Below, in pieces: positions 4,001 to 52,255 of a DNA stretch of 64,000 nucleotides. The notes beneath the pieces are model-generated. The model worked only from the letters and a program-made list of their open reading frames with translations. It did no database searches and had not been told where the DNA came from. The position numbers and the translations under genes were made by a program. Source of the stretch: Histomonas meleagridis 2922-C6/04-290x. Lineage: Eukaryota; Protista; Parabasalia. The DNA is taken from NCBI GenBank assembly GCA_020184695.1, contig JAANOX010000061.1, forward strand, positions 310,001 through 374,000. The letters are read 5' to 3'. Numbering within the stretch: position 1 is the stretch's first letter; every line of letters begins with the position of its first letter.

Positions 4001-5080
4001 AATTATTTGAAACATCACTTATTAGAGCATCTCAAAATGGTCATACAGAAATATTTAAATTACTTCTTGAACAAGAAGGTATTGATGTTATTACTAAAGA
4101 TAAAATTTATTTGTTTTATTTAATATTTATTTTTATAATTTGATATTACAAAATAATATTTGGAAATTATTTAAATTATTTTGGACAGTACTTATGAATG
4201 CATCTGATGAAGGTTATACAGAAATGGTTAAATTACTTCTTGAACAAGAAGGAATTGATATTAATGCCAAAAATATTTATTTGTTTTGTTTAAAAATTAT
4301 TTTAATAATTTGATATTTAGAAATAATATTTGGAAATTATTTAAATTATTTGAAACAGCACTTATTTTGGCATCTTATCGTGGTCATACAGAAATAGTTA
4401 AATTACTTCTTGAACAAGAAGGAATTGATATTAATGCTAAAAATATTTATTTGTTTTATTTGATATTTATTTTAATAATTTGGAAATTATTCAAAATATT
4501 TGGAACAGCACTAATGCTGGCATCTAAAATTGGTAATGTAGAAATTACTAAATTACTTCTTAAACATGAAGGGATTAACATTAATGATAAAAATATTTAT
4601 TCGTTTTATTTAAAATTTATTTTGAAAATATAATAATTAATAATTATTTTTGGGAATCATTCAAATTATTTTCTACAGCACTTATGTGCGCAATTCAAAA
4701 TTTCAACACAGAAATTGCCAAATTACTTATTGAACAAAAAGGAATTGATATTAATGCCAAAGATATTAATATATTTTATTTAATATTTGTATACATGTTT
4801 TAAAATTCTTTGATTATATTTGGTATTTCTGTAAAACATACAATACTGCACTTATGGTGGCAGCTAAAAGATGTAATAAAGAAATTATTAAATTGCTTCT
4901 TGAGCAAAAAGGAATTGATACTAATGCTAAAGATATTAATATGTTTTATATAATATTTATTTAAATATTATAAAATTCCTAAAAAATATTTGGTCATTGT
5001 TCAATATATTTAGAACTGCATCTGTGATGCTTTATAGTCGAAATCATGTATTATTTAAACAGGTTTTTGGACGTTTTTAA
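1091..5080 (+). CDS. DUF3447-type ankyrin gene 1: head ORF 1091-2095, then 17 full ankyrin modules and a terminal capping repeat, separated by 18 non-coding spacers
   Basis: Head has the Trichomonas DUF3447-family motif (SLIDYAAFFGSIKCFKYLL..YAIAGGNLEIVHLCEQ..EAAIKYHRNDIF). Modules such as TALICASSNGHTEIVKLLLEQEGIDINAKD start at 2170, 2340, 2513, 2683, 2850, 2989, 3159, 3329, 3499, 3672, 3842, 4012, 4185, 4355, 4505, 4675 and 4845, all stop-free. The terminal repeat at 5015 ends at TAA 5078-5080. A single gene model assumes the spacers are removed. Confidence 0.75.
2090..5014 (+). repeat. ~170-bp periodic array: 90-nt ankyrin module + ~80-nt AT-rich spacer (18 spacers)
   Basis: Counted spacer lengths: 80,80,83,80,80,49,80,80,80,83,80,80,83,80,60,80,80,80. 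Confidence 0.93.
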
Positions 5081-5240
5081 AAGCATCTAATTTTTTATGC
5101 GATATTGTTTATTATACTGTTATTTATTTATAAATAAACTAATGAAAATTTGTATATAAAATTGATTCTATACATTATATTATTATAATATTTTTCACAT
5201 TTCTTGAATAAATATTACCAAAAATTTCTTTTAAATTAAA

Positions 5241-6497
5241 TTAATTTTTATTATTCTTTTTTTCTTTTAATATTTCCACGAATTCTTCGATTGTCTTCTT
5301 TCTATCCATATTAACCAAAGCGTAATCCATTAACGAGAGCAAATTCCTCATTACATCGGAAGATATTCCTGTTAACCTATGAATCAAATGGTTATGCAGC
5401 ACATTCTCATTACCATTATCCACACTATAACTCATTAAAACAATACTCGGCTGTGGCCCGACTGCCTGATGCACATTCAGCATTACATCTTTTATCATTT
5501 CGTTATGGACTTTAAATCTTCCAATGTTCGTTAGATACAATCCAAGTCCGCGCGGCGCTATATTAACAAATCGTTTATCATCAGGATGCAAAAGAGGCAA
5601 CAAAAGATAACGCGTGTGCCCAATAAAAGCTTTAGTTTGAAGTTCATCTTTAAGACATTTATCAAGTGAGTCAATTAACTCACCAATCGTTCGAGGTTTA
5701 GTATCACCACAGTTTATTAATATGTTTCCAGATTGGTACCCGAAGCTAATCGAAGAGCAAAGAGGCTCAGAGAGATATGGACGAGCGTTAATCGCCGCTT
5801 GTAAGCCATAGCCATCATCAGAAAAGCCACTAAACGCTTTCACGGAAAGAACAAAGGACGAAACAAGCATGGCCGTGAGTTGATGGATATGTGAATTGGA
5901 ACGATCATAACCTGGAAGTGTGGAAATGGGTATTGTTGAATAGACATAAGACGTGTCATCACCGTTGTACGATGAATCAGTTCGGAATTGTGTCATCGTG
6001 GAGTGAAAAGGTGATATGAATAAAGGTTCAGAGGATTCGATTTGGCGTTTGAAGGTGGTCTCACCAAAGAGTGAGGGAGGCATTGTAAGGGTTGGGATTG
6101 TAAAGTCGGGCTTTTGGATTTCTTCAACTATTCGTTGCCATTGACCACCATCAGACCAGGCATGATTGGAATTGTAGACAATAAAACGATCATTAGCAGA
6201 AAGGGTGGCAACTTGAGTAGTTTCATTAGGTTTGGCGTTTTCTATTGACCATTGAATTGCTTCTTCGAGTTTTGTAATAGTATTTGGCATAGAGAAAACA
6301 GTGTTATGATGGTGATCTAAATGAACAATTTTATTTTCTACATCAACAGTAATATGAAAAGAAACAGTGATTGCAAAAATACGATTACATATTTCTTCGA
6401 TCTTTGAAGGATCAGAGATTTCAAGCGCAAGTTGAATATAACATGGTGCAACTGTTGAATATGGTGTCTCCATAATACACAGAGGACGTTCTGTCAT
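5241..6497 (-). CDS. Condensation-domain / CoA-dependent acyltransferase-like protein
   Basis: 418-aa ORF with an HxxxDG motif (NHAWSDGG) at the position expected for the CAT-like/condensation fold; less AT-rich than its flanks. Confidence 0.62.
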   Translation of the reverse strand: MTERPLCIMETPYSTVAPCYIQLALEISDPSKIEEICNRIFAITVSFHITVDVENKIVHLDHHHNTVFSMPNTITKLEEAIQWSIENAKPNETTQVATLSANDRFIVYNSNHAWSDGGQWQRIVEEIQKPDFTIPTLTMPPSLFGETTFKRQIESSEPLFISPFHSTMTQFRTDSSYNGDDTSYVYSTIPISTLPGYDRSNSHIHQLTAMLVSSFVLSVKAFSGFSDDGYGLQAAINARPYLSEPLCSSISFGYQSGNILINCGDTKPRTIGELIDSLDKCLKDELQTKAFIGHTRYLLLPLLHPDDKRFVNIAPRGLGLYLTNIGRFKVHNEMIKDVMLNVHQAVGPQPSIVLMSYSVDNGNENVLHNHLIHRLTGISSDVMRNLLSLMDYALVNMDRKKTIEEFVEILKEKKNNKN

Positions 6498-6927
6498 GGT
6501 GGAAAAAGAACGAATTCGACCAGATTTAAATTGAAAAAAATTTGTATAAACAATAAACCTTTCAATAAATAAATACTTTACAGTTAAACAAAAGTGCTTT
6601 TATGCCAGTTTTTTTAGTCAGAAAAAAAAAATAAGCATATAATTTCCCAAAACCTGCTTCATTTATGCAAACATTGAATCTCGTCCATCACTTAAGGATG
6701 GAATTGATATTTTGTGGCATTAAAAGAAGCAAAAAATAAAATTGGAAACGATAGACAAATGATTAAGTACTGAATTAAAATTTGAGAAATAACATTAAAT
6801 AAACAAAATATTACTGAAAAGCATTCATAAAAATCATTGTAATGTTTAAATGAATTTGTTCTAATGATAAAGTGAACAAGTAACGGTCGCCAACAATTGT
6901 CAATGTCTGTTCGTTTAAATCTTCTAA

Positions 6928-8049
6928 ATGTCTAAATCTAAAGCAAAATCAAAGCCAAGCACAGCCGATGATAATGAGCCATATTACCATCCAGTTCTTG
7001 AAGAACAAATGATTATACGTTTTCCAAAGGATATTGCAGCAAGTCTTACTGCACTTATGGAAGATGATGAACCATTTAAAGATTTCACAATAAAATTCGT
7101 AGACGAACACCACGCAGTTGTTAAAATTTTTGACCAAACATTAAAAGCTGTTTTAGTATCACTTCCAACTATTGTTGAAACACACCGAACAGTTGATGGT
7201 TCACATTTATTTAAATCAGCCGACATTGGAGAAATGCTTATAGTTTATCACCCAAATTCAGAACCTGAAGATATTAATGAGGGTTATCTTTACGAACATG
7301 GACTAACACCTCCAACAAAGGACATTGTTTCCAAACGTAAAGCCAAACAAGAGACAGCTCGTGCTAACCAACCCGACAGCAGTTCTCTTGAAGGAATTGA
7401 TTATTGGGAGATGGTTGAAATACAACTTTCTGCCTTATTATCCAAAGACAAAAGCACCAAGCCATATTGCCGACATGAATTTCTTGAAGAACCCGATATA
7501 GATGCCGTTGAACTTGAGAAAATATTACGTCGAGATGGGCATGAAGAATTCAAAGGATATTCAGGCATTGATATTCCTGAAGAAGAAATCCAATCAATAT
7601 CACCCGAGAACGAACCTATAGTCCACATCCCGCAAGAAATCATCGACGAGATTGCGCCGAAAGAAGAAACAGAAGAAGAAACCGAAGCCGAAATAACGAA
7701 AAGTGACGAAGATGAAGTGATCCAAGATCAGCCTAAAACAGAAGCTACATCATCAACAGAGCTTGAGCCACAATCGGAAGTCTCTGAATCTTCATCGTAT
7801 TATGAAGAAGAAGAGGAGGAAGAAGATATTCCCGAAATGAAAACTTATAAAGACCTTTTAAGACAATACGAAGTGATACAAAATGATATAAAGACAATGG
7901 AAAATAACTTGTTTAAGAATAAAGATAACGAGAGAGTGAAAAATATTATCGAAAATTCTCTGGAAGATAAGAAAAGGAAAATGGCTGACATAGAGGCACA
8001 GCTTCATGAAGCGGAAAGAGCTTTAAATGAGAGGAAGAACAAAAATTAG
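6928..8049 (+). CDS. TAF7: TFIID subunit 7 (TAFII55 N-terminal domain, acidic middle, C-terminal coiled coil)
   Basis: LEEQMIIRFP, LVSLPTIVETHRTVDGSHLFKSADIGEMLIV and HGLTPPT match TAF7 conserved blocks. Confidence 0.85.
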   Translation: MSKSKAKSKPSTADDNEPYYHPVLEEQMIIRFPKDIAASLTALMEDDEPFKDFTIKFVDEHHAVVKIFDQTLKAVLVSLPTIVETHRTVDGSHLFKSADIGEMLIVYHPNSEPEDINEGYLYEHGLTPPTKDIVSKRKAKQETARANQPDSSSLEGIDYWEMVEIQLSALLSKDKSTKPYCRHEFLEEPDIDAVELEKILRRDGHEEFKGYSGIDIPEEEIQSISPENEPIVHIPQEIIDEIAPKEETEEETEAEITKSDEDEVIQDQPKTEATSSTELEPQSEVSESSSYYEEEEEEEDIPEMKTYKDLLRQYEVIQNDIKTMENNLFKNKDNERVKNIIENSLEDKKRKMADIEAQLHEAERALNERKNKN

Positions 8050-8266
8050 ATGATAATAAAATATTTTTATATTTATAAAATCCAAAACTTAACAAAAAGA
8101 AACGATCAAAATAATTGAATGATTTACATATAGTTAATAGAAATTTGAAAGAGAATTGTTCGTTTTTTGTTGTTGGTTCAGATCCTCCTAATGAGTTATT
8201 GGAATAAGTTTCTTTTAATAACATGTTTACTATAATTAAAAGAGGGGGAATTTATTCAATCATAAT

Positions 8267-9676
8267 ATGAATAAAATTGAAAAAACTCAAAGCCTTTTTG
8301 TTACATTTTTATTTATTCTCTTTTTTTCGTATTCATTTGAAGCTTATGATCCATCAACTTTTACACTTACTATTTCAAATTATAGTGACTATATTAATAG
8401 AAGTGAGTATAAAACCAATACACAACATCTTATTTTTGATGTTGTTGCATTCAAGGGACTTGATTTCTATGGATGGCCTTCGCTAGTATCTGTTGCAATT
8501 GGTAATTCAGTCACTTCAATTGGGGATTTTATTTATACTCAAATCTTAAAACAGTAACAATTGGAGACAATGTGAAAACACTTGAAAATCTAGTATTTAG
8601 AGGATGTTTTAATTTAACAACATTTAATATTGGTAAAAATCTGGAAGTGATTGGAGATATGGTATTCAGTCAATGTAATTCACTAAAAGAAATTATTATA
8701 CCTAACAAAGTCACTTCATTTGGGGATAGTACATTTTTACAATGTACAAGTTTGAAAACATTAGTCATTGGTAAAAATGTTACAACAATCGGAAATTACG
8801 TATTTCAATTTTGTACGTCATTAACAGAAATTACAATACCAGACTCAGTTACAACAATTGTATCAAACGTTTTCATGGATTTGTACAAATCTTCAATTTA
8901 TTGAAGTATCTGATGGAAACAAATATTTTTCAGGAAGAAACGGAATTTTATCTAGTAAAAATGATACAGAGATTATATGTTATCCAGCTGGAATCTTTAA
9001 TGAAACATTTGCAATACCAAATTCAACTTTAACAATTGGAAATTATTCATTTTATCAGTGCGTTTCATTAATAAGTATTACAATTCCGTATTCGGTCAAT
9101 ACAATCGGAAATAGTGCATTTCAAAACTGTGTCAATCTCAATTGCATTTATTTTACAGGTTATGAATCACCAACTATCGGCAATAATGCATTCGATGGTA
9201 AAATAAAATTCATTATGACATCGGATTTATATAAAAATGAAACATTTGGTACAATTGATGTATCTAAAGAATCTTCAATTGATGAATGCGGTCAATATCC
9301 TTGGGCAACACACACGTTCACAAATAGTTATTCTTTCTTAAATACATTTACTAAATCAAATACATATTCACAAAGTAATTTATTTACTAAATCAAATACA
9401 TTTTCTAATTCGAATACATTTACTGTTTCACTTTTAACTAATTTAACATATGTTAGTACAGTTATTGGATGTTCATTATATATTTCATACCATTTCGGAT
9501 TTTATACAATTTTTTATCAAAACGTTAACGAACAAAATGATAAATTTAATGAAATTATAATTATTGTTATTTGTGTTTGTATTGTAATAATTATTGGTAT
9601 TTTAATTATTGTTACATTAATTCCTTATAAACGTAAGAAAAAGCAAAATAAAATATTTAAATTTCAATTATACTAA
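8267..9676 (+). pseudogene. BspA-like (TpLRR) surface protein split by two frameshifts (~8530, ~8870); pseudogene or assembly error
   Basis: Signal-peptide-like N-terminus; LRR units (LKEIIIPNKVTSFGDSTFLQCTSL); ELICYPAG-like block; SNTFT repeats; C-terminal TM helix followed by KRKKK. Confidence 0.75.
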
Positions 9677-9799
9677 TAATCATTAAAACGAATTTAGTTA
9701 GTGATATTTTTGCAGAACATAAAACGCGATATGTTTATTATTCTTAGTTTGATTTGATATTAAATTAACTTATTTTAATTATCAAGTTTGATTTCGAAT

Positions 9800-9871
9800 T
9801 CCGATATCGTTCATCGGTTAGGATATGTGGTTTTCATCCACGGGAGCGGGGTTCGACTCCCCGTATCGGAA
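9800..9871 (+). tRNA. tRNA-Glu(TTC): tRNA-Glu (anticodon TTC)
   Basis: Acceptor stem TCCGATA/TATCGGA, anticodon arm TGTGG-TT-TTC-AT-CCACG, T-arm GGTTCGACTCC, downstream T-runs. Confidence 0.95.
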
Positions 9872-9989
9872 TAAATTTTTGTTTTTTTTCTTTTTTTCCA
9901 AACATCAGCAAACAAATCACAACTTAAATCTTTGTGTGAGAACAAATACAAATAAATCTGTTAGAATTTACTTATGGAGTGGAACTAAA

Positions 9990-44467: not shown

Positions 44468-44708
44468 TCAAGTTCTTGTATTTTTTTGATATTCTTCAAG
44501 CAAATTCATAATTTGTATGTGACTGCTATTGTGAGCGCAATCTAATGGCACAATTAAAATAGGTTTTTTAATAATTTTTAGAAAATTCCATTTTAAATAT
44601 TATTAAAAAATCCGATATCAATAATGCATCAACAACAATTCCTTTTTGTTCTAAAAGTAATGTTATAACCTCAATATGATAACACATATGTGCAAAAAGA
44701 ATTACTTC
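44468..44708 (-). pseudogene. Orphan ankyrin module + 67-nt spacer + terminal repeat
   Basis: EVILFAHMCYHIEVITLLLEQKGIVVDALL (44708-44619), spacer 44618-44552, then VPLDCAHNSSHIQIMNLLEEYQ to a stop at 44468; no head domain. Confidence 0.6.
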
Positions 44709-44747
44709 TAGAAGAAAAAATAAAAGTGAAAATTTATTAAAAAAAAC

Positions 44748-44764
44748 TCACCTTCGACGGGATT
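44748..44764. repeat. Target-site duplication of the retrotransposon (copy of the tRNA-Lys 3' end)
   Basis: TCACCTTCGACGGGATT is identical to 51456-51472; extends to ~25 bp with one mismatch if the adjacent A-run is included. Confidence 0.92.
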
Positions 44765-44889
44765 TGTTTATTCATTACCGTATGTTATTAGTGATATTAT
44801 CTTTAATTATAGACGCGTCCGCCTTGTTCTACTTCATTTTGACTCTTGTTTTATTCATAAACCAAATCTCATCGGTTTTTTTAAGAACT

Positions 44890-47800
44890 TTATTGATCGT
44901 CATGTTGGGGATGCCCTAACCCATCCTCAACATTTTCGTCAACAAGTTCTTCTTGATTTACACCAACATCTTCTTGTAAATCATCGATTGAATCTTCTTC
45001 ATTTGATGATGTTGGCTGAATGTTGATAGTAGTATCATTATTATTTTGTAGTACGTTATACTCTTTAAAACTCTTATATAATAACAACATAGATTCTCTT
45101 AAAGCAGCTACTGAACATCTTTTTGCTACTAATCTCGCTGTTCTTTCATTATTATATAATAATTTTAATTCATGAATTGTTTCTTCAGGAATTGCACCTA
45201 ACGAGGATACTACTATAACATAAAATTCTTCTCAACTCTGAAGTTGATTTTCTTTCATTACTATTTGGGTCGTCAGTTAATTGACCATATGGTGACGTTA
45301 CTTCAATAATTTTAAAATTTTGATAATTATTAGAAAACCACCATACATCCGGTTTAAGATTTCTGGAGTTTCCTTCTAATCTTATATTTCTTTTACTGAT
45401 TGGCCTATCATAATTAAATATAATATTATTATTTGGTTTAATTTTTTTTAATACTTCTTTAATGATTACATTATGTCGAATAGTATATTTATTTCTTAAA
45501 TTATTGCAACCATTTAATCTGTGCATGAGGGAATCATTGTAATTGTTATTACATTTATGACAAATTCCATCGCCGATTCCATTTTTATACAAAATTTCGC
45601 CTGTAGGCAAATTATTTGTTCTTGAAACTACGGCGAAATGTATAATAGAGTCAGCAGTTGGAGCTTTGTAATTTCCAATGAAGAAATTGGATAACGGAGA
45701 ATTTTGTAACGTGTTAAATGTGTGACCTTTGATAGGTTTTGCTCTTAATCTTTCTTCATGTCTGTTTTTAATAATATTATTTAATTCTTTTAATATATTT
45801 GTTTCATCAACTATTATTTTATTAATATCATTTGAATTGTTGTTTCATATTGTAGCAGTTTCTTCATTAAAGTTCATCTTCATACCAATTTTTAATTTGG
45901 CTAAAGATTTAATTGTTCTTGAGAATAAACAATTTGTTCTGTTTTGACTAATTTGTGTAATTATATTATTCTCATCAACTGGAATATTCCCTAATTATTT
46001 AAATAGGGTGAATTGTAATCTTTTTCGATCTTTCTATAAGCTATTTCATTAATAAAAGATTGTCTGAATAATTTCCTAGAATTTGGATCAAAAGATTTTA
46101 TAATATTTAGGAAGTTCTTAATTTGTAAAGTTTTAGCTCTTTCCCATAATTTTGGTAATCCTAAACCTCCATCATTCCATTTAGTATAAAATAATTCTTT
46201 AGGTAAACTATTAGTTTTACAATCCTTCATAATTAATTTCTTAATCATTGTATCAATATTATTTAATTCTTTCTCTGAACAATAATAATTTAATAATTCG
46301 AAATCTATTTCAGGAATAATCATTCTTTTAATCGCATTCATCTTTTGATTAAATTTTAATGGGAATTTCATAATTTTAATGATTTCATTTTTGATTTTAT
46401 TTAATCTAATATTAGCATGATCAAAACTACCTTTTCTTTTAATTACTGCAGATGAACCTAAATATTCTAAAGCTTCTAATAATGGTAAATTAGGAATATT
46501 TTCATTCTGAATTTGTAAGTTATAATTTAATGTAACTCTTCGATTATTTTCTTTAATATAACTTAAAGTATTACATTTTTGTGGAGCCATTGACATATCA
46601 TTCTTCTTACAGAACTTTTCTACTGTATTTAACATGTTTTGCATACCTTCAGGGGTTTGAGAAATCAAGACTATATCATCAGCATAAGCTTGAATATTAA
46701 AATATATTACCTCATTATCATTTGTATTAATTGTAACACCATCCAGTTTATGCTTAATCTGGATTTTCTTTAATAAAGGTTCTAAGCATAAATTAAATAA
46801 TAAAGGTGATAAAGGACATCCTTGTCTTACACCTCTATTTATTTTAATTTGTTCAGTTCTTTTATTTCCAACTTTGATAGTAGTATAAGAATTATCATAT
46901 AAGTCTTTAATTGCTTCTATAAATTTCGTTGGGAATCCTCTTTTCTTTAAACTCCATAAAATAGCTTTATGAGGAACAGACCCAAAAGCATTAGTAAAAT
47001 CTAGTGTAGTAATAATGATTGAAGAATTATTTCTTTTAGCTTCAGAAATTAATTCATTTATAGTTGCTATATGTTCTGAAATACCATTAATACCAGCTTT
47101 AAATCCTTTTTGTACATGATTAATGAAGTTACAATTTTGATTTATAATTTGGATAATCTTTTAAATCTGACACATTACAATTCTATACAATGTATTTGAT
47201 ATTGATATAGGTCTCCAAGATTTAATTTCTTTTGGATCACCTTTGTTATATAATAATATTGTTTTCGAATTTTTTGAAGTTTGTGGAAATTTTCCGAATT
47301 TAATTATTTGTTTTATTAATCATTTTAATAATTTTAGTAGTTGATTTAATATCTATTTTCCAATTCCATCTGGGCCATTAGCAGCCATATTTGATCTTGA
47401 TCTTATTGAATTTCTAATTAAATCCTTATCTAATAGATTATTTAATAAAGAATCTTTATTTTCTTCGTCAATCATAGTTTTTAAGTCCCATAAACTATTT
47501 TGTTTTGGTTCTTCAAAATTCGCAATTTTATCAAATTGTATTTTATAATAATTTCCAACTTCTTCTATATTAAAATCACATTCTGGTATAGGATCATTTA
47601 ATATATACCATCTAATAGCTCTAACTGGATCTTCTCGATACATGTTTTGAGTTATATTTTTATATTTTCTTGATATAATATTCATATTATCTTGTTGAAT
47701 ATTTTCTAATGTAGCTGAAATATAATTTGATATATTTTCTCTATGTTATGGATTATCATTTATAATGTTTCGAATATGTTCAATGTTATTTCCCTAAATT

Positions 47801-49631
47801 ATTATATTTAATATATCATTATTAGTATTCTTTGAAATATTTTCTATTTCTATTTCAATACTTGAAATAGTATTTAATATAGTTTGTGTAGGTGTTTTAT
47901 CTTTTAATTCTATAATCCTTTTAATATGACTAGTAATTTCTGATAAATTTCTAATTATATTGTTTTGTCTTCTAATTGTATCTTTTTCTCTATCTGTGAT
48001 TTTATTTTTCTTAACAGATTTACCTAACATCTTTTCTAAAGACATATGTAAAGTTTTTCTAATAATTTTTCTAATTAATAAATTCATTTTGGCTAATCCT
48101 CCTTCAAAGATTATCCATTCTGTTTCACTTTCATTTATTGGTAAACATTTCTTAAATATTGGAATTATTTTATTTTTCATACATTCTTTAATTGGAATAA
48201 TAAGTTTTTGTCTAAAGTTTTTAGTAAGTTTAGGTAAATGAATCTCATTTTGTTTTTCTATTTCTACCCTATTTAACCATTTTCTACATTTTATTAGTAA
48301 ATAGTTTCTTTCTTCTATAATAATTTGTTGTTCTTTCTGAGTCATTCCTATATTTTTTACTTGTTGTTGTTCCTGATTTTTTTTTGTTGTTCTTCTTGAT
48401 TATTATTTAGTTGTTCTTCTCGTTGTTGTTCTAGATTATTATTTTGTTGTACCTCTTGATTATTCGGTTGTTCTTGTTGAATGACTCTTTGATCTTGATT
48501 TTGTATAATAATATTATTATTTCTATTAATTTCTCCATTAATTTGTTGATTAATAATAATATTTCTATCATTGAAGTGATTATTATTGTTATCATCTGTT
48601 GATTGTTCTTGAACTTCAATTTCATTTTCAATCTCATCAATTTGTTCTTGTAACAGGATTTTAAATATTGTGGATTTAATTTTAATCTTTTGTTTTGGGA
48701 TAATTGTTCCTTTTATTCTTGTATCACTATGCATTGAAGATGCATGTAATTTTAAGTTTCCTTTATTAGCTGTAATTGTCTTTTTACAATAACCACATAA
48801 TAAACCATTTCTTTCTTTCATTAATTCTTTAATATTTGGTGTTCTATTAACTTGATTTATCCAATATTTAATAGTCGCCCAAATCCATCCTATTTCTGAT
48901 TTTTTATCAACTATATATTTGTGTTTGGTATTCATATGTGAAGAAAATGAACCCTGATTAATAGTAAAATAATCACAATTTGGACGAAAGCAAAAATAAA
49001 GATTCTTATGATAACTCTGATGTTGGTCTTGTAAATTAACTTGTTCCCAATAATTTTCTCTTATACTTAAAAAGTTTAAAAATTCTAACATTGTACAACC
49101 TGGAAATGTTTTATTATGTATTTGTTTCTCATGATATTTCAAATGACATACACATGTAAATGCTTCTCCATCTCCTTGTGTACATACAAAAGGTCCTAAA
49201 CCTGGCCAAATTTTTTCGAATGCTATAATATTTAAAATTGGTATTTCGAATCTATTATTATTGCACATGAACGAGTTCTCGTATAAATCTTTATTTTTCC
49301 ATTTATTGATTACTGATTTAATTATTTCTTTAGTATTCGCATTTCTAATATCATTTAATAAATTTTCTGGTGTTAAATCTTCTTCATCATTAATATTATT
49401 ATTATTATTATTTCCATTATTGTGATTATTATTATTATTATTATTATTTGAATTGATGTTATTGATTTGATTTTGAATTTGATTTTCTTGTGGTATATTA
49501 TTGTTATTGAATCCTGAGGATGTAATATTCGAGTTTAGTTGATTTTGATTATCATTGTTATTTTGATTTTGAGTTTTGTTATTATTTAGATTCATATTGA
49601 TATTAATATTTGGTAAATTATAGTTTGGCAT
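44890..49631 (-). pseudogene. Retrotransposon polyprotein: C2H2 zinc fingers, RT, CCHC, restriction-like endonuclease (fragmented)
   Basis: Pieces 48357-49631 (three finger-like motifs), 47794-48345, 47353-47685, an RT frame from 47160 to 45991 (in-frame TAA at 47161-47163), 45185-45610, and a C-terminus ending at 44890. Confidence 0.88.
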
Positions 49632-50364
49632 TGAAAAATTGATATCTTTTTCTACAAATTTAATTTTTGGTATTATTATAATTTGTTCATTAATTTTAAT
49701 CTGTGGAATATTAACTGGTACAATTTCTTTATTGTAATACGGAATAGGAATATTAATATTTCGTACTTGATTATGATAGTTTGGTATTGGAATATTAATG
49801 TTTTGTATTTGATTTTGATAATTTGGAATATTAACTAAAAAATTTTCTTGAATTGTATTGAGGTATTGGTATTATATAATTTTGTAAATTTTGTTGGTAA
49901 TTTGGTATGTCTATTTTGAAATCTTCTTGTTGATAATTAGGTATTGGAATTATAAAATTTTCTGTTTGTTTCTCATACTCTGGTATTTTAATAGGTACCA
50001 ATTTTTTCTTAAATTTAAAAATTGGTATTAAATAATTTTCTTTATTAATTTTAAAATCAGGAATTGTAATTAACTTGTCTTCTTAATCGTAATAAGGTAT
50101 AACGACATTAATTTCTTCATTATTGATTTTGAAGTCTGGAATATCAATAATTTTTTATTCAACTTTTACTACTGGTAAATCACAATTTATGTTTTTCTGT
50201 GTAATTAAGAAATTAGGAACATTAATTGGATATTGTTTAACTTGTGTAACATGAGAAATGTTATTATTTGGTCTAATTTTATTATTTAAGTATTGTAATG
50301 TGTCAGGTCTGATTGATAATGTTTTATTTATAATTCGAAAAGTATCTGGTGGTAAAATTAAACC

Positions 50365-51438
50365 TCAATAAGAACATATATTCGGGATCTCAATATTGAT
50401 GTTATTTTGTTCGATGATTAATATCCAATATGGTAAATCAATTTCAGTAAAATCTTTGTTTTCATAATGTTCATTAATCATATAAATTTCTTTCCAAGCA
50501 TCTGGATTAATATTATTGAATATTCCAAAATCAACTTGTGTTTTTAATAAATTTAATGCTGTCGGTAATTTTCCGTAAGTTTTTGTCCATGAAAAGATTA
50601 ACGTCCAAAAAAACCCGACGGTTTGTAAAGAATTTATAATTATTTCTGAACTGTGGTCTTGATTTATATGGTTGATTAATTCAAAATTGTCAGAAATAAT
50701 TTTATAACAATTTGGAAACGGACAGAATCTTTCATAATTTTTTGATTTTATAATATATTTGTTTTTAGTCAATAATCTATGTATGATTCTTTCGTGAAAG
50801 AGTAATTCTTGATTATAGTCAATATCATGTTCTTCTGCTGATAAATGTTTTGATAGTATTTGAAAATCTTTTGTGAAAAAATTACATTCTGGAACTAATG
50901 AACAACAAAATTGTTCGGGTAATGGAATTTCACGAAACTCATTTAATTTGAATAATTGATAAATTGGGAAATTTAAAAAATTATAAATTAATAAATTTTG
51001 TTGTAACCAAATGTTAGGCTTTGGTATTCGTTTCTTGATTGCTTTGCTAATAATTCTTTTAATTTCTTCTTTGTTGGGAAAATCTTCATTAAAAATATAA
51101 TTTTGTAAAAAGTTTTGTAATGTTCGATCTGTAATAATTTCTTTGTTATCTCTGTGATAATTTTCATTAATATCCCATATATTAGTCTTATCTTGTAGTA
51201 CATGGTCGAACTTTAAAATATAAATATCTTCATAATTATTCGTAATTAAAGATTCGTTTTCTGTTGATCGTAATCTAGAGGTATGATCCTCTATTCCTGT
51301 AAAATTGTTAGTCTGAAGTTTTGAATTTCCAAATAATCTATCTGATGAAAATTCGAATTTTGAGAAATATATATCATTCGATTTCTCTCCCTGTAACGGA
51401 GCTAAAGACGAATTCTCAGCAAAAATAGAACCATCCAT
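50365..51438 (-). CDS. Retrotransposon N-terminal zinc-finger region (start MDGSIF)
   Basis: CSLVPECNFFTKDFQILSKHLSAEEH and CPFPNCYKIISDNFELINHINQDH; the ORF-track start at 51483 lies inside the tRNA and is spurious. Confidence 0.65.
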   Translation of the reverse strand: MDGSIFAENSSLAPLQGEKSNDIYFSKFEFSSDRLFGNSKLQTNNFTGIEDHTSRLRSTENESLITNNYEDIYILKFDHVLQDKTNIWDINENYHRDNKEIITDRTLQNFLQNYIFNEDFPNKEEIKRIISKAIKKRIPKPNIWLQQNLLIYNFLNFPIYQLFKLNEFREIPLPEQFCCSLVPECNFFTKDFQILSKHLSAEEHDIDYNQELLFHERIIHRLLTKNKYIIKSKNYERFCPFPNCYKIISDNFELINHINQDHSSEIIINSLQTVGFFWTLIFSWTKTYGKLPTALNLLKTQVDFGIFNNINPDAWKEIYMINEHYENKDFTEIDLPYWILIIEQNNINIEIPNICSY

Positions 51439-51456
51439 CAAAAAACGAAAAAAATT

Positions 51457-51529
51457 CACCTTCGACGGGATTCGAACCCGCAACCCCAGGATTAAAAGTC
51501 CTATGCTCTAACCGTTGAGCTACGAAGGT
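51457..51529 (-). tRNA. tRNA-Lys(TTT): tRNA-Lys (anticodon TTT), intact
   Basis: ACCTTCG/CGAAGGT acceptor stem, TAGCTCAACGGTTAGAGC D-arm, TAGGA-CT-TTT-AA-TCCTG anticodon arm, GGTTCGAATCC T-arm, followed by a T7 terminator. Confidence 0.95.
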
Positions 51530-52255
51530 TCACGTTTCCTTTTTAAATTTTGATCCTATAATACAAACACGGGTAATACGAAACCAATCAATTTTGAATG
51601 TCAAACAACGATAGCCTCAAAAAGGATTTTTGTAAGAAAAATTGTTAACAAATGAGAAGAAATCCTAAAAAATGGTAGAGGTGCAGTCAAAATAAATTTC
51701 ACAATGGAAATTTCTCGAAATTTCTACTATAGATAGAGGAATATACCTATATATCTATAAACACCTATTTTTGGGATTTCTTCTGTACGTTTTGGAGAAA
51801 AAGTGATATTACGAAAAATGGAGCTGGTAAGAGTTTTTATAAAAATATTAGCACCTTTACAAAGTACATATATATGTGATAAAAAGTTAATTTGAACGTA
51901 TCTCGATATATCCTATTTATAATGATAAGCATCAATTTATAACCAACGTCAATTTCCTTAATTATAAAATCTGAAATAAAAAGATGCGATACTCTTGTTT
52001 TTTATATATTTTTATTATTTATGATCTGAAAAATTATTTATCTGCAATGGTGTTGTTATGCCATATGAAGATTTTGGCTTTTATCAGGTGATGGTCAAGG
52101 GTAAAAGCAAGAAGTTCTTTATGCTATTAAAGCTGGGCAAATTTTAATGTCGTATTCAGTTATCTTTAGTGAAAGAAACAAAATCTCCATTTATAAATTT
52201 TAATTAAATGAAAGTTTTTGTACCTGAAAATTAAAGCTGATGTGTGGTGTGTACG

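Follow-up and report, generated by a model that had tools for sequence, protein, structure and literature searches.

How can a retrotransposon lodge within a transfer RNA (tRNA) gene and leave that gene complete? The question is raised by a locus of the parabasalid Histomonas meleagridis 2922-C6/04-290x, located in a stretch of 64,000 nucleotides (assembly GCA_020184695.1, contig JAANOX010000061.1, positions 310,001 to 374,000), hereafter called the window, with coordinates counted from its first letter. On the minus strand of the window, a complete tRNA-Lys(UUU) gene is directly followed by an element of about 6.7 kb in the same orientation, and the latter by a second copy of the last nucleotides of the tRNA. 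Our analysis leads us to consider, with high confidence, that this is a site-specific non-LTR retrotransposon (one lacking long terminal repeats, LTRs) of the restriction-like endonuclease (RLE) type, which enters the T-loop of tRNA-Lys genes while the tRNA is preserved. With regard to the way in which the gene is made whole again, we favour, with a probability of roughly 0.55, a reading drawn from the comparison of sequences, according to which the rebuilt tRNA 3' end would be borne by the element and would not result from a plain duplication of the target.

The tRNA-Lys locus and the layout of the element

The tRNA-Lys gene upstream of the element was called by both ARAGORN and Rfam (71.9 bits), and its sequence is identical to that of the tRNA-Lys genes of the same allele (T5/A59) that are empty, i.e. 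that harbour no element. The 17-mer AATCCCGTCGAAGGTGA, corresponding to tRNA-Lys positions 58-73 (the last 16 nucleotides) plus one base, occurs exactly twice in the window, both times on the minus strand, once at the end of the tRNA gene and once behind the element (Table 1), for a chance expectation of 0 (100 shuffles). Between these two copies are found a leader resembling an RNA polymerase III (pol III) terminator, the start codon ATG of the element (51438-51436), a broken reading frame of about 6.5 kb closed by a stop codon (44892-44890), and a 3' untranslated region (UTR) terminating in AATAAACA. The 3' junction of the element is placed between G57 and A58 in the T-loop of tRNA-Lys, with a one-base ambiguity stemming from the terminal A's of the element. 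The second 17-mer is followed by G-T8, the original trailer of the targeted tRNA, and similar T-run trailers are carried by the empty tRNA-Lys genes and by the tRNA-Glu gene of the window. No reverse transcriptase (RT) match other than that of the element was found in the window, and the window copy is a dead (broken) one.

An earlier note, made from the letters of the window alone, had described this very succession of an intact tRNA-Lys, a T-run, an element of about 6.7 kb and a second copy of the tRNA 3' end on the minus strand, as well as a T-loop junction ambiguous by one base, and both descriptions were recovered here, the junction being read at 57/58. The tRNA-Glu gene, which the note had regarded as uninserted, indeed runs (9799-9872) into an ordinary T-run trailer and DNA that does not belong to the element.

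In other respects, the trailer of this tRNA-Glu(UUC) (9799-9905 together with the gene) consists of a triple T-run, T5-G-T8-C-T7, and double T-runs are present behind all five empty tRNA-Lys genes. Multiple T-run trailers look like the usual layout of pol III terminators in the H. meleagridis genome.

Copies in the genome and site specificity

The genome contains 12 tRNA-Lys(UUU) genes, of which seven are occupied (on contigs C14, C29, C61, C79, C153, C154 and C237) and five are empty. The element stands at the same T-loop position (57/58) in 7/7 occupied genes. Each of the seven 5' ends of the family adjoins a complete tRNA-Lys(UUU), preceded every time by a different upstream flank, and the independent 3' ends that could be recovered (C14, C29, C61 and C153) all consist of AATAAACA followed by the 17-mer remnant (4/4). 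The collection of genomic copies, proposed in the earlier note as a check on its claim, thus came out in favour of a target in tRNA-Lys at both ends of the element. Genome-wide, the 17-mer was found 17 times, with 12 occurrences in tRNAs and five behind a 3' end of the element, two of these five remnants belonging to contig ends, of C29 and C155, that overlap each other. The end of C29 (227594-227627) and the start of C155 (1-34) share 34 nucleotides across the element 3' junction, and it is very probable, from this overlap, that both contigs abut. The copies of the Lys family are 90-98.7% identical to one another, the value for C29 and C237 being 98.7%. An intact copy, which the note had wished for, is not to be had from the assembly (0 intact copies), where every copy is broken.

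In all copies, the difference between the upstream flanks extends as far as the tRNA's first base, which would also be expected of a 5' boundary of the element, and one may therefore ask whether the tRNA-Lys is a part of the element, the whole being spread to arbitrary sites with no target specificity. We judge this extremely improbable, as five identical tRNA-Lys genes are found without the element, and as the occupied and the empty gene of C79 have 400 nucleotides of upstream flank in common, at 95.8% identity, which assigns the tRNA to the locus rather than to the element. Furthermore, C29 harbours a chimeric tRNA (C5 with A59) together with a G59 remnant, only the 17-mer and not the whole tRNA is found between the elements of tandems, and the T-run trailers behind the remnants resemble the ones of native tRNA genes. 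When the empty and the filled site of C79 were compared, the shared sequence ended at the first T-run, and the downstream flank of the empty site was not found within 19 kb of the filled one.

Origin of the rebuilt tRNA end

A site-specific insertion into the T-loop leaves the question of which of the two 17-mers is the old end of the tRNA and where the other comes from. The tRNA-Lys genes exist as two alleles, T5/A59 and C5/G59, position 59 being included in the 17-mer. Behind the element, A59 is found in the remnants of C61 and C153, and those of C29 and C14 display G59. Within the terminal 475 nucleotides of the element, C29 is united with C14 by two sites and with C153 by three, and C14 carries 16 private changes. 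G59 does not follow the lineage of the element, and the remnant is therefore derived from the target, two of the four targets having been G59 genes. A remnant G59 inherited with the element as a marker was considered, and was rejected on the site patterns of these 475 nucleotides.

The same alleles bear on the possibility of an insertion directly behind the tRNA (after position 74), with the tRNA untouched and the 17-nucleotide tRNA-like tail owned by the element. Such an insertion would give the same final sequence, and AATAAA lies 9 nucleotides before the 17-mer, so that a read-through transcript could include the latter. However, the A59 and G59 tails correspond to the two alleles of the tRNA and disagree with the element tree, on which at least two changes at this site would be needed; furthermore, every family and each of the metagenomic relatives presented below would have to possess a tail fitted to its own tRNA. 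In one of these relatives (contig L064), moreover, the remnant matches a tRNA-Ile of the same contig. An insertion behind the tRNA consequently appears improbable to us.

With regard to the insertion within the T-loop, the copy of the 17-mer on the left, i.e. in the rebuilt tRNA, tells a different story from the remnant. It displays A59 at both loci with a G59 remnant (C29 and C14), and the rebuilt gene of C29 keeps the C5 of the G59 allele. Overall, A59 is found in 7/7 occupied genes versus 2/5 empty genes (Fisher one-sided p = 0.045). Since the left copy carries A59 although the remnant shows a G59 target, the rebuilt end would be borne by the element. The leader, A-T7/8-(C)G-T6-G-ATG, is kept in all Lys copies and is not repeated at the 3' flank.

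The main competitor of an element-borne end involves the same element, but with 17-mers representing an ordinary target-site duplication, generated by a bottom-strand cut at 57/58 and a top-strand cut 17 bp downstream, the element then starting at the T-run leader. In the window as well as at C153, no difference exists between the two 17-mers, and related RLE elements can give duplications of about 20 bp, for instance reptile Utopia (PMC4640811). A duplication nevertheless predicts G59 on both sides, whereas the left copy is A59 at both G59-remnant loci, so that a later conversion would be needed twice; it also has to accommodate A59 in all seven occupied genes although three of the five empty genes are G59. 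The tRNA-Ile of L064, cut in the T-loop and followed by a probable element start with no duplicated 3' end, would speak in the same direction, the identification of this start being weak (E 0.005). A mixed model may also be envisaged: the 17-mer would be carried by the RNA and would pair with the staggered top strand, and repair of the mismatch could then go in either direction. Taken as a whole, we regard an ordinary duplication as rather unlikely, though it deserves to be kept in mind.

Several points weigh against an element-borne end. The allele test is informative at two loci only, and one of them, C14, is rearranged (3.4 kb of unrelated DNA) and has a tRNA with T5, not the C5 expected for a G59 target. 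Gene conversion between near-identical copies (C29 and C237 share 98.7% identity) could bring A59 after a plain duplication. In the search of the region 44500-51700 against Rfam, with E values up to 1, the tRNA alone was found and no ribozyme or other family, and every copy in the assembly is broken. Finally, the public runs in which the element is present consist of contigs of uncertain type, which show neither transcription nor the strand or ends of an RNA. In four runs of one study, whose contigs were guessed to be RNA, the 3' half of a sister copy of about 98% identity displays a higher word depth than the 5' half.

Proposed insertion cycle, arrays and relatives

The zinc-finger modules of the encoded protein, described in the next section, would recognise the tRNA-Lys gene, and its nuclease would nick the bottom strand between T-loop positions 57 and 58, the reverse transcriptase then priming on the nick. 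We infer such a target-primed reverse transcription from the invariant 3' junction (4/4 copies) and from the known biochemistry of the R2 group. The element lies in the same orientation as the tRNA, with its 3' end joined to tRNA position 58, and its 5' end would carry tRNA positions 58-73 and a pol III terminator, the rebuilt end being templated by the element. The leader resembles the double T-run trailers of native genes, and the rebuilt gene thus probably obtains a native-type terminator from the element. This gene would stay functional and become a target again, and the renewal of the target would lead to head-to-tail arrays behind one tRNA gene. We consider the chances to be evenly balanced that the element carries its own template for tRNA positions 58-73 and the pol III terminator, replacing the tRNA 3' end, in a manner common to the whole clade with one family per tRNA.

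Arrays in which an element is followed by a remnant, a T-run and the next element were found at C14, at a tRNA-Arg locus and in metagenome contigs (L063, L065-67 and L070). Behind the remnant of C14 come the leader and the initial 190 nucleotides of another copy. The tRNA-Arg locus belongs to a sister family on C227, which occupies tRNA-Arg(ACG) at the same T-loop position with the same domain order, and shares 49% identity with the Lys family in the RT-nuclease part. Like those of the Lys family, its elements terminate in AATAAAC(A), and their leader, which has the form A-T7-NN-T6-G-ATG in both families, reads A-T7-CA-T6-G-ATG. In the piece C227:108000-117999 (5650-9420), the Arg-family 3' end (...AATAAAC) precedes the last 16 nucleotides of tRNA-Arg, T7-GA-T6 and the start of the next element. 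A complete tRNA-Arg is found 360 nucleotides further on C227, then A-T7-CA-T6-G-ATG and an open reading frame (ORF) with zinc fingers.

A word search retrieved metagenome proteins sharing 30-46% identity with the Lys family, and named arthropod and nematode R2/NeSL-like proteins at 24-28% identity; no named Trichomonas protein was present among the best 120 matches. In 8/8 metagenome contigs of relatives, a remnant resembling a tRNA 3' end and a T-run lie just past the 3' UTR, and the AATAAACA terminus is found in four of them (L062, L063, L065 and L066). No full tRNA was called on these eight contigs, which contain 3' remnants and a single cut tRNA-Ile only. One of the relatives possesses a single, unbroken ORF of 2042 amino acids with the same layout as the Lys-family element.

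Contigs L065, L066 and L067, from three samples, contain the same head-to-tail pair, with AATAAACA, a 20-nucleotide tRNA-like remnant, A-T7 and the unbroken 2042-residue ORF. In L064 (49% GC; 5700-6480), the remnant is the 3' end of tRNA-Ile(GAU). About 560 nucleotides downstream, the 5' part of a tRNA-Ile stops after position 59 and is followed by 'gcaga ATG', with neither a rebuilt 3' end nor a T-run. The sequence behind this cut tRNA-Ile shows only weak similarity to the N-terminus of the family (E 0.005) and was not relied on.

Encoded protein and type of element

The element harbours a single long reading frame, whose domains are listed in Table 1 together with the other features of the locus.

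Table 1. Features of the tRNA-Lys locus, in the 5' to 3' order of the minus strand (positions of the window)
Feature	Position	Strand	Basis or remark
tRNA-Lys(UUU) gene, allele T5/A59	51457..51529	-	Directly upstream of the element; ARAGORN and Rfam
Left 17-mer, rebuilt tRNA 3' end	51456..51472	-	A59 in all 7 occupied genes
Element leader A-T7-CG-T6-G	51439..51455	-	Pol III terminator-like; directly precedes ATG
Single long reading frame, ~2,150 codons, broken	44890..51438	-	Three-frame reading; comparison with the C29 and C153 copies
N-terminal module 1: two C2H2-type zinc fingers, then W-rich helix	50556..50910	-	Direct reading
N-terminal module 2: three C2H2-type zinc fingers and W-rich helix	48728..49190	-	Reading; zf-H2C2_5 5.8e-4
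RT core, approximate limits	46549..47226	-	RVT_1 match of the C153 copy, projected through a 92%-identical alignment
CCHC zinc knuckle and PD-(D/E)xK endonuclease	45230..45562	-	Lysine motif lost via 64-nt deletion
3' UTR, 125 nt, terminating in AATAAACA (44765-44772)	44765..44889	-	Strand reading and copy comparison
Right 17-mer, displaced 3' end of the original tRNA-Lys	44748..44764	-	A59 or G59 across four loci
G-T8, the targeted tRNA's original trailer (pol III terminator)	44739..44747	-	Strand reading

In the window copy, the frame shifts in the order 0>1>0>2>0 and is interrupted by about 10 in-frame TAA, TAG or TGA codons. In comparison with the copies of C29 and C153, 64 nucleotides are gone from the nuclease domain, including the lysine motif. 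An alternative genetic code was considered for the in-frame stops and rejected, as the window copy has true frameshifts and the sister copies are open at these places.

Upstream of the RT, the frame carries two zinc-finger modules, which are similar to each other (E 1e-4) and represent an internal duplication. Module 1 also resembles both modules of the intact metagenomic relative (E 4e-4 and 1e-3), and the zinc-finger region of the C29 copy matches the FOXP-CC zinc finger of Pfam at 2.1e-7. The two modules are separated by short repeats of the IPIPNY/NIPNYQ type and then an Asn-rich tract (49300-50200, minus strand), and the C153 copy is similar in this respect.

The longest open frame among the copies, 877 residues on contig C153, matches Pfam RVT_1 at 2e-36, and its best solved relatives are R2 proteins (5.6e-44), versus 1e-26 for L1 ORF2. 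The alignment extends to the R2 C-terminus, with its CCHC knuckle and RHN motif. This knuckle is located C-terminal to the RT, as is the restriction-like nuclease, for which a weak match to the L_protein_N domain of PD-(D/E)xK type was obtained, and the motifs Cx2Cx11Hx4C, RHN, KPD, EVT and EKxxKY could be read in the copies of C153, C29 and the Arg family. By Pfam, neither the N-terminal pieces nor the intact 2042-residue relative matched an apurinic/apyrimidinic endonuclease (APE)-type nuclease (Exo_endo_phos), and no protease domain was found in the element pieces or in this relative. Judging from its RT, the order of CCHC and nuclease, and the lack of an APE match, the predicted protein is that of an RLE-type (R2-like) non-LTR retrotransposon, a type that the earlier note had already recognised and to which the RVT_1 and R2 matches and the CCHC, RHN and PD..E..K motifs lend weight.

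Relation to known elements

Within this type, all copies of the Lys family occupy one position of one tRNA species (7/7 occupied genes, 4/4 recoverable 3' ends), as expected of the tRNA-specific RLE elements. It differs from NeSL-1 sensu stricto of nematodes, having no protease domain by Pfam and a tRNA gene as target, and from R2 sensu stricto, its target being tRNA-Lys and no HDV-like (hepatitis delta virus) ribozyme being found (Rfam, E up to 1). Integrators of the tRNA-proximal kind, such as Dictyostelium TRE and yeast Ty3-like elements, are guided by pol III factors and insert some distance upstream or downstream of tRNA genes, beyond their coding region, whereas every copy of the Lys family has its junction at a single nucleotide position within the tRNA.

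Tyrosine or serine recombinases, acting through DNA-DNA recombination, are used by the bacterial elements that integrate in tRNA genes. These integrative elements and phages bring a replacement tRNA 3' end, by which the gene is kept intact, and the old end is displaced to the far junction. The similarity of the Lys family with them would be convergent, since it would be reached via reverse transcription.

Among the described RLE elements, NeSL-1_TV of Trichomonas vaginalis is specific for tRNA-Pro (Kojima and Jurka 2015, PMC4640811), and LIN15_SM and LIN25_SM, from the R5/LIN lineage of the planarian Schmidtea, target tRNA-Arg and tRNA-Glu, respectively (PMC4640811). Like NeSL-1_TV, the Lys family is a parabasalid RLE non-LTR retrotransposon specific for one tRNA gene species, but this species is tRNA-Lys(UUU) and not tRNA-Pro, the two families being compared by description only. 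With LIN15_SM and LIN25_SM, also compared by description only, it shares the RLE type and the specificity for tRNA genes, whereas these are animal elements of R5/LIN. The earlier note had attributed a U2 snRNA target to Utopia/NeSL-type elements of T. vaginalis; the same survey (PMC4640811) reports no Trichomonas Utopia, and NeSL-1_TV is given there as tRNA-Pro-specific. As for the new target specificity suggested in the note, the tRNA-Lys target and the family are new, but tRNA targeting by RLE elements, including a parabasalid one, had already been described (PMC4640811). In the literature that we searched, neither a tRNA-Lys-specific family nor the present Histomonas elements were described. 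The Lys family therefore adds to the known tRNA-specific RLE elements and does not represent a new mechanism, the evidence on the rebuilt end alone going beyond what is known.

The order of N-terminal zinc fingers, RT, CCHC and nuclease in a single ORF is common to the Lys family and R2 (9nl2, 9dou, 8gh6 and 8ibw), both of which join a multicopy RNA gene precisely at their 3' end. In contrast to R2, which resides in 28S ribosomal DNA and inactivates the unit entered, the Lys family has two zinc-finger modules, leaves its target gene whole and can form arrays. Hiding in multicopy small RNA genes, namely those of tRNAs and snRNAs, is also a feature of the Dada DNA transposons (PMC8869645); these, however, are DDE-type DNA transposons with 6-7-bp duplications and without reverse transcriptase (PMC8869645).

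A well-documented tRNA-Lys-specific family is thus added to the few tRNA-targeting RLE retrotransposons. Furthermore, the genome yields 61 protein matches to the RT-nuclease part, spread over dozens of contigs at 34-51% identity, some of them in open frames of 1000-1500 residues. In the published annotation of attenuated H. meleagridis, 23 retroelements with a combined length of 2.6 kb are given (Palmieri et al. 2021, PMC8529796), so that a large group of retroelements was missed. The allele test raises the question of whether an element can supply a replacement tRNA end and terminator, its target being self-renewing. If true, this would represent a retrotransposon counterpart of the rebuilding of tRNA genes in bacteria, present in Histomonas and in organisms known from metagenome contigs. 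It would also offer, in nature, a case in which RNA templates a seamless insertion at a defined site and the gene is preserved, a matter of interest for insertion tools of the R2 type.

Observations on individual copies

A further element copy, at 557.9 kb of C61, adjoins a garbled tRNA-Lys. It was considered as an eighth independent insertion and rejected, being colinear with the C154 locus over 8.9 kb, flank included, at 81.7% identity; with substitutions of every type, it is not a hypermutated copy. Between C61:549000-562000 and C154:1-10000, 115 nucleotides at the start of contig C154 are 100% identical. The C61 stretch results either from an old segmental duplication or from poor polishing of the assembly.

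In the C14 copy (C14:66500-76400), the RT and most of the nuclease are replaced by 3.4 kb of DNA with 21% GC (5040-8507 on the element strand), in which no similarity to any of the loci compared was found. The occupied C79 locus (C79:125001-143999) has a 1.8-kb insertion inside the element. Beyond the last colinear block of the element, the same strand of C79 holds further element fragments 1.3 and 5.6 kb downstream, and these look like what is left of older copies that had been stacked.

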